Numbered from the stretch's first letter, positions 27,826 to 61,150 are shown. The stretch is DNA of 64,000 bases from Dicyema japonicum (GCA_011109175.1 RDEW01000053.1:1-64000), one strand, 5' to 3'. A program made the numbers and translations. Notes: generated by a model not told the origin, from the letters alone.

Positions 27826-28050
27826 AATATATAGTGTAATCACATGTAGAGCTATAATAACACACGTGCGGCATGCGAAGCGATTCTATCTAGTAGCCAC
27901 TTAAAACACTCGGACACGATATTTCTTTAGAGATGAGGTAATCCCCCGTAACCCTGTTGGCAGGAACGAAAAAAATAGATTTAATAAAATAAATATTTAT
28001 TTACAAAAAAAACACTAAATTTAAAAAATAAATTAAAGTACCGCCTTTTC

Positions 28051-28621
28051 ATGTGAGCCTATTATTTATTGAAGGGATTATTCATTCGAAGACGTTGAAT
28101 TTTTGGCAGAAAATGAACTTATCGGAATCGTTCCAAACTTCACTATGAACAGACTTTGTCTTATCTGTGGTGAATTTGGACCATTTGTAGCAGGTCTTCC
28201 TACTGAAACTCCTCTCTGGGTGGCTATAACTCTACGCCAGCGACACAAATGTTCAATTATTCTTCCAAATTGGTTCTCGATCGAGTCCTTTAAACAAATG
28301 AAGGAAATGGAGAAGGAATCCAAGATATTCTGTGCTCTTCCGTCACAACATTTCCGTGAAATATCCTATCAGCTGATTAGACACGTGGGTGATGAGATCC
28401 CACACCTGGTTCAACTCAAGTCGCTCCTTCTGGACATAATCGACGTGAGATTGAACAAACTGAGGAACAGTGTGGTCGCTTTCCTGAAGAACACGGCTTC
28501 CGTGAATGTTTTGGCCACATATGCCCGACTGAACAACCTCACGCCCTTCGAGATATCTCTTTTTAGGGATCATTTTACTTCCTCGCTTGATTTTGTACAT
28601 AAAATCAGATATTCTATCTGA
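28051..28621 (+). CDS. GINS2: DNA replication complex GINS subunit Psf2
   Basis: AT|G split by 22-nt intron 28053-28074 gives MDYSFEDVEFLAENELIGIVPNF...GEFGPF..G.P...PLWVAI.L.QRHKC...P.W...RLNNLT..EI. Confidence 0.93.
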
Positions 28622-54276: not shown

Positions 54277-55752
54277 TCAGGGAACACTTGGTTCAAGCAA
54301 TTGATACCGTCTGAGCACATCTCTCCCATCCCTGGTAACGTTAGCGAGGTTCCTGGCAAAAGCAATGACTTCATCGTCATGCGAATCGATAGCTGTGACT
54401 AAGGCTTCTTCATATTCGCTTAAAAATGAAACCACAAAACACCTTATCGAAAATAACAGAGTAATGCGTCTCCTAATAGGCAGAGACGAGATCATCTTAT
54501 TAGCAATGATGCGATTCACCTCATAAACCTTCTCAATAAGTTGCTAAAACTAAGTTAACGGAGAACGGGGATCTTCTGTAAGTCTTCAGTTTCATGAGGG
54601 ATGACCAGTTCTGATTAGACAGGAGAGATTCTGACTTTAGCAGACACCATCTAATATTAAGCAAAGATACCACTTATAATCGGTGATTTTTATTCGTTTC
54701 CGCAAACTTTGAGCTTCTTTGACAAATCCGTGGCGGAAAAGAACTCTGAGCGTGTCATTCAAGGACAATTGGGAGAGAGATAACATTCCATATTTTTTGT
54801 CGTATTTTTGCTGAAATTCCAATAAAATCAACTCTTCTTTAAATATCTTTAAATTATTATAAATTAAAAACAGAATCTGATTTTTTTAATTTTAAATAAA
54901 TTAAATAAAATATTTGACTTTGGATATTATCATTGTGGTTGTTATGAATTACTTTTATTGAAATCATTTTCCTACCTTCAAATTCCATTTTAGGACTACT
55001 ACAGAGCCATTTGTTGAGTACTTTTCGATGCGACTGAAATATGGCAAAAAAATCACTTTTTGTTTTCTTAGAAGGTTAAAGTTCTCATGAAAGTCCTTTT
55101 TATTTCGACAATTTGAGTAGACCTGATCTAAAAATTTCAATTTTCCCGAGTCAGCTGCCACTTTAATGGCTTCGTAGTAAAGTCTGAAAATATAAACATT
55201 CGTACTTTCCGCTAATCAAAATGCTGATTTGTTGTTCAACACTACATTTAGCTAAAAGTCTTCCAAAAAGCGATATGTTGTCATATTCCAAGCACTTTTC
55301 CATCGCAAACTAATTCTTAGCTAATAAAATACTCTCAATCTCCCATACGAGTCACAAAATGTTCTCAGGTCCGTTTCTCTGCCTCTATTCCCGGCTATTA
55401 GCCGCTCGGCCTGGATGTAGGCAAGTCTCAAGTTACAGATCAGAGTACCTTTTGACTGAGATTTCGTCACATTGCATCATTTCAGGTCCAATAAGGAGAG
55501 CTTTGTGCAGAGAATCTGTAGATGACTTTAAGCCTAAGTTGTGCTGAAATTGCAGTATTTTTATTAAAGTTGATATTTGCTACAATATTTAGCTAACAAA
55601 CTCTCCCATCGAAGCTTTCCTTGTCCGCCTCCAATTCAGCCAACCGTAAATATTTGATGTTATCTTCGAATGACTTTGTCAGAAATTAATGTCACCTTTG
55701 ACTGATAAGCATTAATAATATTAGCGTTTTCATGATTTAATGTGGGCAACAT
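54277..55752 (-). CDS. Protein of two tandem VPS16 C-terminal-like modules; 10 introns
   Basis: LLEFQ..YD...LSLNDTL..LF..G...A..L....KI.DYK.W...L......W..L..L...R.SP matches the VPS16 C-terminus; the first half repeats the pattern. Introns 22,22,22,23,22,23,139,23,16,24 nt. Confidence 0.75.
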
Positions 55753-56619
55753 TAATATTTTTTTAAATATTTGGTTTAAATATTTTTTTTATTTTTTGAG
55801 TTCATATAACTCATTAATTTACCAAAATTTATTTTATTTATTAAATAGAACGTAAATTAGCCATTATTGTCGACACACCGCGATTTTTCCGTGCACTTTT
55901 TGTCCACAATCCAGGAAATTGGTAGCAGTCGTCGACTCTAATTCAGAGTCGTTAACTCTGTATCACTTCTACTCCGGCGACGATGAAAATTCGTGTCATC
56001 GCCCGACATAGAAAGAGCTCACTTTATGACGCCCTTATCAAATACCTCAAAAACCACCTCAGATACTAAAAGACTCCAAGTTCGCTATAGAGAAAAATTC
56101 ATGATATCATCCTCGCCGGTCAAAATCTCCTCGAATCATGAAAATACCGGGAATAAGCTTCCAATGTTCATTACCCACGTTCATCTACCACCCACATCAA
56201 CATAAGTCACTGGGACTAGGGAATATGCAATTCGACGGTTATTGAGTAAAGCAGGGATCACCTAATGTGCGCATTATTGATGATTCTTGGTTCTAAAAGA
56301 CCAGCTATTGATTAGGATGCTTGTCCTCTCAAAATATATGTAAGCCCAGTAAAAAAAACTTTTACCACAAAAGTAAATTACTAACTGATTTTTGTCTTTT
56401 TATCCACATCACGTCTCTTATTGCACTCAAAGGGGTCCTACAATAATCACGTCCCAGTTCCACTAGTTTTTGAAGCAGCCTTAAAAAATCTCCAATGATA
56501 AAAAATATTTGTGAATGTACTGAAATCTAGATTTTCAACGTGGTTCATTTTCACGTAGCGTCAGTTTCACTCTGGCAACTACAAGAACTGCAATTACCCC
56601 TATCATCCTGCTCCAACCT

Positions 56620-57279: not shown

Positions 57280-58017
57280 CGTGGAGAACTTCAAATCACT
57301 TTATGTTTCCGTGAAATTTTTCAAATAGGTTATCCTCAATATACGGTCAGTTTCCTCCTTCCATATACTGCTGATTGCCTCCATCATCCTGGCAGATATG
57401 AATTCCCCGTCTATTTTGTCGACACAACGCCTTAGCTTTGCTCTTAGGCGATTCCTCTCACAAATAAGCCTCATAATAATTGGCGAAACAAAATAATGAT
57501 TATTCTTTGAGAAAACCCTTCGTGCATATAGGTGAAGATATGACTGCATAAGATTCGTTACTTCTCGACTTGCAGTATTGATATCTCCTATGGTTGAATA
57601 CTCTCTCGGTAGAACACACATATTATTGGATATGAAGACCCTATAATGGTCCTAATCCAAATGAGATGTGTTGAACCTCAAGAAGACATCTTCCATAACA
57701 TCTGGCCTCATACTAATAACCAATTCTTGTGAATATGGTCGTTCCTGATATCCCATAGAGTTTTTGGCTTTCCCACATAGACAGATAGAGCTGGCGATAC
57801 TAGCAATACGGCGAGTTTGTCCCCACCATGATAAGTCATCCGATGTAAGAATCACAGAGGCACATGAATCAGACAATAATTCTAAACGTTGTCCATCCTG
57901 ATTTGTCTTGCAACAGCCATAACTAGTGTTCTTCGAATTAAGATCCCCAATTAAGATAGTATAGGGATTCTTGTTGTTGAACTCAGAGATATCAGTAGAA
58001 TAAGTCTCAAAATTCAT
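57280..58017 (-). mobile_element. Jockey/I-like APE fragment
   Basis: ILIGDLNSKNTSYGCCKTNQDGQRL. Confidence 0.75.
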
Positions 58018-58823: not shown

Positions 58824-60016
58824 TTAGTAGACCCTATCGTACACAACCCCAGAAACGGTCTCCTTCTTGGGTTGATTATTAGCATCGTGTGCTCTCCGCG
58901 CCAGATATTCAAACATAGAACTCTCATGCATCCCCAAAGTCTTCGCAATCGACACAGGCTTGGGATCAGCATAAAAATAGTCATGCTCAAGAGCCTGGTC
59001 ACAGTCAAATCGTCTCTCAGGGTTATACACCAACAGTCTCTCGATCAGCTCAAAGGCCAGAGGGTCCATTACGTAGCATTTCAGCTTATCCTTGTGAATC
59101 CCGTTCACCGGTCCAGTAGAAGGTTCGGTCAATGCCTTGAAGTGTTTTAGTTTGATCACGTGAGGCCACTCATTGGGGCTAACGGGGCCAAGCAAGTGAA
59201 TTATCAGCTTCATCTGTTGGGCCTCGCTAGATCCCTGCAAGATCGGGACCCGCGTCCACAATTCAGCCATAATACAGCCAACTCCCCACATGTCTACAGC
59301 CGTCGTATAGAGTCGCTCCCCCAACAGCAATTCCGGTGGTCTGTACCACAGAGTAACTACTCTGCTCGTATATCCCTGATTGGCACGGAACTGCTTACAA
59401 GGCCGAGCTAGTCCAAAGTCCGCCACCTTAAGGATCCCCGATTTGGTTATTAGAATGTTCGCAGCCTTCATATCCCTGTGTAGAATCTGTGAATAGTGCA
59501 AGTAATGAAGTCCCTCTAGCAGCTGCTTAGAAATCTACTATTTTAGAAAGTCACAACGTTTTTCATTTCAGCGTCCGAAAATTTTACCTTCTTGTTGAGA
59601 AGGAGTCCAGCCAAATCGTAGTCACAGTACTCGAAGACTAAATAAAAGAATATATCCCCGTCTTCTATCGCTCAACTGAAACTACTTTCTCGGCATGAGC
59701 AGACTTCTATCAACTCGACAACGTTTGGGTGATTCACGTGCTGTAAGATCTTGATTTCACGCAGTGCAGTAATGGGAAACTGAGAATTATGACAGTAGTA
59801 CCCCATCTTTTTCGTTTTCTGTTAGGATCTTCTTCAAGGCCACGGTTTTATTAGAATGTTTGTCTACAGCTTGAAAAACTTCCCTAATGCAATAGAATTA
59901 AGTATATACCCGAACGTGCCCTGTCCGATCTTCATCTTTTTAACATATTTGTCATTGATGTGAATATCCAATATGGGACCTCTGCTAGCCTGAAATTATT
60001 TATGACAAGAAACCAT
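58824..60016 (-). CDS. CDK9: Cyclin-dependent kinase 9
   Basis: IGQGTFGEV, VALKK, ENEKDGFPITALRE, HRDMKAANIL, DFGLAR, YTSRVVTLWYRPPELLLG, C-terminal YDRVY. ATG-only first coding exon; introns 24,26,22,21,23 nt. Confidence 0.96.
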
Positions 60017-60109
60017 CACAAGGATAGTTCTTAGTTTAAAGTTTAAATTCAATATTTCATTTTTATTTTTAAATTTAATGTAATGTATTACTTTTTAATA
60101 AAAAAGTAA

Positions 60110-61150
60110 TTTTGGTGTTTTCCTATTTCTCCAGCTTCCTCACATACCTGACTAACAGTATTCGCTGTGGATTTCTGTACAAGCCAAGACACCAGAATAT
60201 TGTGTTGTGCTCACTAGACGTCCACAAAGCTTTCGATTCTGTGCCGAGGAAGAATCTAACATGGAAAATCTACCAATCAGATATCCCTGAAAACCTAAAC
60301 GCTGGCTGACAAACTTCCTTAGCGGACGGAGAGGTGGAGTGTGCATTGGAAACATTCATTCTGTCTCCCGTTTATTCCCAAATGGAGTACCCCAGGGAAT
60401 GCCGCTATCACCATTCCTATTCAACCTATTTGCAGCTGACATTCCGACGCCGAATAGAGATGACGACCTGCTTCTGGCTTATGCAGACGATATTGTTTTA
60501 GCCTCACGGGATCAGAACACCCAAACGAGACGGGAAGAATGCAACATCACATGGATCAACTACTCGAGTGGTTTAATGAAAATCGGATGTCAATCAATAC
60601 CGAAAAATCTGTTACAACTCTATACCTCGGACAAAAGATTGTCGAGCAGGACAATAGAAGTTACTGCGGAGGGAAGAGCACTGTCCTTCAGCAATTGGCA
60701 AAAAATATTGGGTCTAATTTTAGATCCGTACATAAATTTTTCGAGACACGTCACTAACATGCTGAACAAATGTGAGAAGAAAATTAACCTTCTGAAATGC
60801 CCAACAGGTCTATGGAAAATTGGACATCATCCTATACTTACGCTCTACTCACAGTACATCGAACCATGCATTTCATGTGCGTGTACTTCATGAGGAATAC
60901 TGACTTATTATACAAACATCCAGAAAATCTCCGCAACCCAGAAGAAGACCTTCAAGCTAACGGAGAGATGGTACACAGGGGTAAACATTAAATCACCGAC
61001 GCCCACGGAGAAACTAATCGAAAAAAACAAAAATGGACACCAATGCCAAAAAGAAAGTGCTCGCCCGCAACGAACTTGTGTAGGCTCAAGGGATCAACAT
61101 CGAACAAAGATGAGAGCCTTGATTCAATTCGTCGGGATCACTTAGTTTAG
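60110..61150 (+). mobile_element. Jockey/I-like LINE 3' half
   Basis: LDVHKAFDSV, GVPQGMPLSPFLFN, AYADD; ends in cgggatcacttagtttag. Confidence 0.85.

Follow-up and report, generated by a model that had tools for sequence, protein, structure and literature searches.

The minus strand of the window (the whole 64,000-nucleotide stretch of Dicyema japonicum DNA that was analysed, RDEW01000053.1:1-64000) carries a VPS16-tail locus that runs from 55752 to 54277, is read in the standard code, and is interrupted by GT-AG micro-introns. D. japonicum is a tiny parasite of octopus and a drastically reduced animal. Once the GT-AG micro-introns are removed, the locus has an open frame of 378–390 codons. 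The spliced model combines the six introns proposed in an initial annotation, all of which have GT...AG ends exactly where they had been placed (22, 23, 22, 23, 16, and 24 nt), with three more, a pair of 22-nt introns towards the 5' end and a long gap, into a 1137-nt coding sequence for which the terminal TGA is the sole stop. The frame starts at an ATG (55750-55752), with a TAA in frame 13 codons upstream and no AG in between. The published genome comprises 67.5 Mb in 377 scaffolds with a mean intron of 38 bp (PMC6736024), and ultra-short introns have likewise been reported (PMC13644364); the genome searched here holds 67,542,437 bases in 377 sequences. The features of the locus, in the order of transcription, are as follows.

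55753-55877, minus strand: AT-rich block directly ahead of the ATG, with 14% GC in the adjoining 110 nt, of promoter-proximal type
55696-55752, minus strand: exon 1, 57 nt; the junction to exon 2 has a unique ORF-preserving solution
55674-55695, minus strand: intron between exons 1 and 2, 22 nt, phase 0
55602-55673, minus strand: exon 2, 72 nt, with a 22-nt phase-0 intron on either side
55580-55601, minus strand: intron between exons 2 and 3, 22 nt, phase 0
55449-55579, minus strand: exon 3, 131 nt, with which unit A opens; as in the canonical unit, the intron before it is of phase 0
55427-55448, minus strand: intron between exons 3 and 4, 22 nt, phase 2, GT...AG
55333-55426, minus strand: exon 4, 94 nt; its counterparts are 100 nt (canonical VPS16) and 91 nt (half B)
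55310-55332, minus strand: intron between exons 4 and 5, 23 nt, phase 0, GT...AG
55206-55309, minus strand: exon 5, 104 nt, the same length as its canonical counterpart; the distal helices of unit A begin here
55184-55205, minus strand: intron between exons 5 and 6, 22 nt, phase 2, in an alignment column identical in half B and canonical VPS16
54976-55183, minus strand: exon 6, 208 nt, carrying for unit A the distal helices of the VPS16 tail and ~40 aa beyond the canonical C-terminus
54847-54975, minus strand: middle gap, 16% GC, either a 129-nt phase-0 intron or a spacer between two genes
54674-54846, minus strand: exon 7, first exon of unit B, 173 nt (acceptor 54846) or 137 nt (acceptor 54810)
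54651-54673, minus strand: intron between exons 7 and 8, 23 nt, phase 2, GT...AG
54560-54650, minus strand: exon 8, 91 nt (100 nt with an alternative 22-nt intron)
54544-54559, minus strand: intron between exons 8 and 9, phase 0, 16 nt as first annotated, GT...AG
54443-54543, minus strand: exon 9, 101 nt
54419-54442, minus strand: intron between exons 9 and 10, 24 nt, phase 2, GT...AG, at a position that matches a canonical intron
54277-54418, minus strand: exon 10, 142 nt, ending in the TGA stop (54277-54279)

The gene model outperforms chance by a wide margin. Five micro-introns suffice to cross half A, whereas none of 200 shuffles could be crossed with five or fewer (187 of the 200 could not be crossed at all), and two suffice for half B, equalled by a single shuffle in 200. 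The same micro-intron path test applied to the antisense strand of the locus returned no crossable path in any frame. When long introns were permitted, the minimal-intron path skipped whole exons and was uninformative. A ciliate-type code with TAA and TAG read as glutamine was rejected, as the spliced model is free of in-frame TAA and TAG; such codons appear because micro-introns are read through, the stops sitting inside them.

The extent to which the sequence fixes the splice boundaries was assessed by listing every ORF-preserving GT-AG choice for each junction. Junctions 4 to 5, 5 to 6, 7 to 8, and 9 to 10 each have a single solution within the 20–27 nt usual for this genome. The last of these introns (54419-54442) is in frame and stop-free, such that the frame stays open even if it is retained. 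For junction 3 to 4 there are two adjoining 22-nt options, 55427-55448 (phase 2) and 55449-55470 (phase 1), both of which preserve the ORF; the former yields ...EISVKR, fitting KLSNKR and KITDYK of the other two units, and is the better match to the homologues. These two introns are mutually exclusive and exchange ~7 residues (CDEISVKR versus CTLICNLR), so that the adjacent pair at 55427-55470 represents a possible alternative-splicing micro-switch, or mere ambiguity. The 16-nt intron at 54544-54559 has six other ORF-preserving GT-AG choices (19, 22, 28, 31, 31, and 40 nt, including 54529-54550 with 22 nt and 54532-54559 with 28 nt), all of phase 0 and with the donor shifted by at most three codons. 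Exons 1 and 2 can also be joined along a second, equally parsimonious path with other boundaries and another frame for exon 2, and the assignment of the first 43 residues is accordingly provisional.

The tethers HOPS and CORVET acquire their SM protein, VPS33, through the adaptor VPS16. Using a genome-wide six-frame search, Vps16_C was found at two loci only: canonical VPS16 (G000:C345:661011-663928), where Vps16_N and Vps16_C were both matched, and half B of the present locus (27.5 bits). The canonical gene was modelled as a minimal-intron path, which is approximate in mid-gene and clear in the tail. Similarity was scored as Smith-Waterman z scores against 1000–2000 shuffles. Half B aligned over the last 165 residues of canonical VPS16 (z = 14.6), and its proximal exons alone scored z = 10.7 against the canonical proximal exons. 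Exon 7, when extended to 54846, matched the Vps16_C profile (PF04840; 28.3 bits, E = 1.2e-6, positions 154-205; curated cut-off, 21 bits). These alignments clearly mark half B as a VPS16 tail.

The affinity of half A is confined to its distal part. Half A as a whole scored z = 4.3 against the canonical tail and z = 0.5 against the canonical head of Vps16_C, from which it follows that a reading of half A as just the N-terminal portion of a typical Vps16_C domain does not fit. The distal exons (exons 5 and 6) account for recognisable similarity both to the canonical distal exons (z = 5.2) and to those of half B (z = 7.5), while the proximal exons (exons 3 and 4) showed no similarity to the proximal exons of either (z about 0), exon 3 itself having no significant similarity to its counterparts. 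Half A is thereby recognisably VPS16-like in two distal exons only, and exon size and phase are the sole features that suggest homology in the proximal ones. The initial annotation had likened both halves to the VPS16 C-terminal region, which holds throughout half B and for the distal but not the proximal exons of half A. The two halves do align with one another, weakly but significantly (Smith-Waterman score, 58; z = 4.5–5.3; BLASTP E = 1.5e-4, 29% identity over 70 aa). The possibility that a likeness between head and tail is intrinsic to Vps16_C was rejected, with the canonical head scoring z = 0.6 against its own tail (errors in the head model, built as a minimal-intron path, are possible).

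When the profile was applied exon by exon, exon 7 alone was matched (19.3 bits before its extension to 54846) and the other exons, those of half A included, were silent. This silence means little because three of four genuine VPS16 tail exons are silent on their own too, and the fourth scored 13.4 bits, below the cut-off. PDB sequence searches with exon 6, the exon 9–10 read-through, exon 7, and a three-sequence exon profile returned no VPS16 chain, exon-length queries being insensitive. Exon 6 is unique in the genome, and an exhaustive protein search with it among 1.84 billion representatives recovered no relative and no annotated protein; the sole match, a DUF4444 protein whose score extended over six repeats, was rejected as unrelated. 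Among atlas look-alikes, exon 7 had none and exon 6 drew ankyrin-type repeats, below the recognition line and without Pfam support, which may be a faint sign of helical-hairpin character and no more.

The halves also agree in their introns. The tail of canonical VPS16 contains introns of 18, 21, 24, and 22 nt in phases 0, 2, 0, and 2, enclosing exons of 155, 100, and 104 nt. The same phase series (0, 2, 0, 2) is common to half A, half B, and the canonical tail, with a phase-0 intron preceding every one of the three units, and the unit exons are of similar size (A, 131/94/104 nt; B, 173 [137]/91/101 nt; canonical, 155/100/104 nt). When the three units are aligned, their phase-2 introns occupy the same columns and their phase-0 introns lie within 1–3 columns of one another. 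The shared columns and phases identify the repeated unit as the four 3'-terminal exons of a VPS16-type gene. The matching phases (2, 0, 2) and enclosed exons (94/104 and 91/101 nt) on which a tandem duplication had originally been proposed were recovered as claimed, and the canonical tail now adds a third instance of the pattern. The duplication is evidently old: copies A and B share about 25–29% identity, and DNA similarity between the halves did not rise above shuffled controls. It is thus very probable that this block of four terminal exons was duplicated in tandem long ago, with ancestral intron positions persisting as 16–24-nt micro-introns in paralogues that have almost no sequence identity left. 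To our knowledge a tandem-duplicated VPS16 tail has no precedent, and none was met in a limited literature. Propeller-less relatives of VPS16 are already known (VIPAS39), and the duplicated tail is what appears to be new.

That the protein lacks the β-propeller, as first proposed, was borne out across the window. Vps16_N (PF04841) matched only the canonical VPS16 contig in the genome-wide six-frame search, and a tblastn search of the modelled canonical VPS16 against the whole 64-kb window recovered half B only, with no propeller exon. The full-length VPS16 that had been anticipated elsewhere in the genome is the canonical gene described above. A complete collinear Vps16_C domain (head and tail, positions 1-320) was not recognised at the locus, as judged by local pairwise statistics and intron positions. 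Overall, the locus can be read with confidence as a coding locus of the VPS16 family that has no propeller and holds the tail unit in two old copies. Upstream of it lie LINE fragments and a kinase gene. The latter, the next gene upstream, is of CDK type (58824-59501 and on to ~59990, minus strand; HRDMKAANILI...DFGLAR), and an AT block (59991-60138) is situated beyond its 5' end. The LINE (non-LTR) fragments occur at 57301-58017 (minus strand), separating the kinase gene from the VPS16-tail locus, and at 60339-60893 (plus strand), and include an endonuclease-like part and a reverse-transcriptase part (YADDIVLAS). Another non-LTR fragment sits directly downstream of canonical VPS16 (G000:C345, about 664000-665200).

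Whether the two halves form one gene or two turns on the middle gap. A single fused reading frame of ~390 aa is given slightly better than even confidence. Exons 6 and 7 occupy one genomic reading frame; the donor at 54975 is of phase 0, and acceptors at four positions keep the frame open (introns of 99, 129, 144, and 165 nt). In the fused form the donor at 54975, three codons ahead of the old unit A stop, would be spliced over the 129-nt AT-rich spacer to the acceptor at 54846. Lengthening exon 7 by 12 codons to 54846 raises its Vps16_C score from 19.3 to 28.3 bits, which indicates that family-like coding continues upstream of ATG 54786, the only in-frame ATG after the AT block. An out-of-frame ATG in strong context (54791) lies 5 nt ahead of this in-frame ATG, both within exon 7.

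The composition of the gap favours a gene boundary, current or former. The gap is 16–18% GC and is part of an AT block (54789-54984), one of 21 such low-GC blocks in the window, which together make up 1.5% of it (others include 27965-28074, 55697-55877, and 59991-60138). Blocks of 3–20% GC and about 100–300 nt lie directly upstream of the ATG in all six genes with a placeable start; such blocks were seen in the window and also at loci designated L019, L006, L009, and L012, and they look like a compact promoter-proximal signature of the genome. The micro-introns are 29% GC and the ~1.6-kb long intron (or insertion) of Vps45 is 32% GC, so that the gap is unlike introns and like gene-start blocks. 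A 14-mer, ATATTTTATTTAAT, is common to the AT block of the clathrin heavy-chain gene and the gap of the VPS16-tail locus. A duplicated promoter was rejected, the gap and the upstream region of the gene having no DNA similarity above shuffles, and an operon or trans-splicing pair was set aside, as no literature support was found for spliced leaders in dicyemids.

The strongest rival to fusion is a pair of tandem genes, a reading that is possible though it commands distinctly less confidence. Exon 6, if unspliced at 54975, ends VGK-TGA (stop, 54964-54966), so that gene A would encode ~225 aa and gene B, with its promoter inside the AT-rich gap, ~147–180 aa; both would be short VPS16-tail proteins, and only B would be likely to bind VPS33. 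The gap is then an AT block of gene-start type at a typical spacing, ~55 nt upstream of ATG 54786, with an AATAAA 4 nt past the TGA of gene A, and it has half the GC content or so of the genuine long intron (16–18% versus 32%). This pairing is opposed by the 12–20 open codons upstream of ATG 54786, which fit Vps16_C and for whose translation there is no ATG after the block, by the strong out-of-frame ATG that precedes the in-frame one, and by the presence of both halves in one reading frame. Further, unit B begins exactly at the ancestral phase-0 exon boundary, without equivalents of exons 1 and 2. The two readings may be reconciled if two tandem genes became fused via splicing over the former spacer, which may itself be a still-active internal promoter; the locus would then be a possible example of tandem genes joined by splicing across a former promoter block.

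Considerably less probable is a plain orthologue of VIPAS39 (also VIPAR, SPE-39, or VPS16B), the propeller-less VPS16 relative that pairs with VPS33B outside HOPS and CORVET (PMC6005816, PMC4510706). Such an orthologue would be a single-copy Vps16_C solenoid in which half A is a diverged head (positions 1-150). Its length (378–390 aa) and the match of exon 7 at positions 154-205 would suit a collinear 320-position domain, metazoans normally possess a propeller-less VPS16B (PMC4510706, PMC6005816), and like VIPAS39 the locus lacks a propeller and has a Vps16_C-type solenoid, with canonical VPS16 as the genome's only other match to Vps16_C. Unlike VIPAS39, however, it appears to consist of two copies of the tail unit rather than one collinear head-plus-tail domain. 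The likeness of half A is to the tail rather than the head (z = 4.3 versus 0.5; distal exons, z = 5.2 and 7.5), and the introns of half A follow the tail pattern, with a 104-nt exon matching a 104-nt exon and a phase-2 intron in the same column; the introns of the canonical head are placed differently, according to the reading of the canonical frames. The setting also differs from that of VIPAS39, as no VPS33B-type second VPS33 was detected. The locus may nonetheless have a VIPAS39 orthologue as its ancestor, with the tail duplicated afterwards. With canonical VPS16 it shares the alignment of half B to the tail and, in both halves, the four tail intron positions and phases; it differs in having neither Vps16_N nor the Vps16_C head, and in a duplicated tail whose first copy has diverged in its proximal part. 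Least probable are non-functional relics, partial duplicated 3' ends of VPS16 neither expressed nor translated, for though repeats and LINE fragments surround the locus and exon 6 has no relative or annotated protein among the 1.84 billion representatives, the copies have only ~25% identity to their parent and each other and yet keep open frames over four exons with GT-AG micro-introns intact (shuffles doing as well, 0/200 for A and 1/200 for B), where pseudogenes decaying over so long a time would be riddled with stops.

The retained segments bear on what the protein may do. The hairpins of human VPS16 that bind VPS33 have A669 and R725 as key residues. The fragment of human VPS16 crystallised with VPS33A comprises residues 642-736 (PMC4510706, PMC6005816), and unit B covers Vps16_C from about position 154 on, including the probable equivalent of these residues. 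Having apparently kept the VPS33A-binding segment, unit B should bind the single VPS33 of the genome. Four Sec1-family loci were found in the genome and typed against solved structures as VPS33, Sly1, Vps45, and Munc18, the VPS33 locus (G000:C2, about 1128–1130 kb) having human VPS33A as its best match (4bx9, 2.5e-11). VPS33B was undetected in an exon-wise genome search with no VPS33B chain among the PDB matches for comparison, an absence limited by the recovery of about 76–77% of conserved core genes in the published D. japonicum assembly (PMC6736024). Loci for VPS8, a VPS39-type zinc finger, and CHCR domains are present in the genome; Pep3_Vps18 was undetected in it, which is not conclusive.

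With the propeller and the solenoid head missing, the protein is probably unable to replace VPS16 in HOPS or CORVET. Its most likely role would be that of a monovalent VPS33 adaptor or competitor that acts, like VIPAS39/VPS16B, outside the HOPS/CORVET scaffold, with the distal helices of unit A perhaps providing another contact. Taken together, a fused propeller-less VPS16-family protein with a duplicated tail, probably such a monovalent adaptor or competitor, is the best explanation overall and is held at about even confidence. The initial annotation had gone further and suggested a bivalent SM-protein adaptor, which gained no support: the proximal part of unit A, equivalent to the VPS33 hairpins, scored z about 0 against both half B and canonical VPS16, and only one VPS33 gene was found in the genome. 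Lacking recognisable proximal hairpins, unit A gives no support to a second VPS33 site, and one protein probably does not hold two SM proteins. A remodelled tethering complex, also raised at the outset, is speculation. It is improbable that the two-tail polypeptide is a minimal self-contained tether or dimeriser, in which B would hold the only VPS33 and A a second VPS33 or another partner, replacing part of HOPS, CORVET, or CHEVI after the loss of VPS33B; a SNARE, a Rab effector, or VPS18 would be candidates for that other partner.

The Tetrahymena CORVET paralogues (bioRxiv 10.1101/737247) offer a precedent for lineage-specific duplication and re-specialisation of class C/CORVET subunits. They are, though, whole-subunit paralogues in a free-living ciliate, whereas here a sub-domain is duplicated internally or in tandem in a reduced animal parasite. 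A dicyemid with one VPS33, a canonical VPS16, and a tail-only relative with a duplicated tail would illustrate how a minimal animal cell rewires its VPS module. The locus would also amount to a natural experiment on the parts of the VPS16 tail, with the proximal hairpins kept in one copy and the distal helices in both. The practical weight of this is limited, as the organism is not experimentally tractable.

Several features of related genes were observed elsewhere in the genome. Two CHCR matches of equal length and near-equal score, G000:C323:2107380-2107682 (plus strand) and G000:C323:2079788-2080090 (minus strand), lie inverted ~27 kb apart and may be an inverted duplication of a gene of the VPS11/18/39/41 class. 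In the Vps45 gene (G000:C246:235164-236807), ~1.6 kb of 32% GC separates positions 74 and 75 of the Sec1 model, a rare long intron or an insertion amid introns of 20–27 nt. The clathrin heavy-chain gene (G000:C323:1705380-1710890, ~5.5 kb; locus L019) seemingly contains micro-introns only, its open frames abutting or overlapping throughout.
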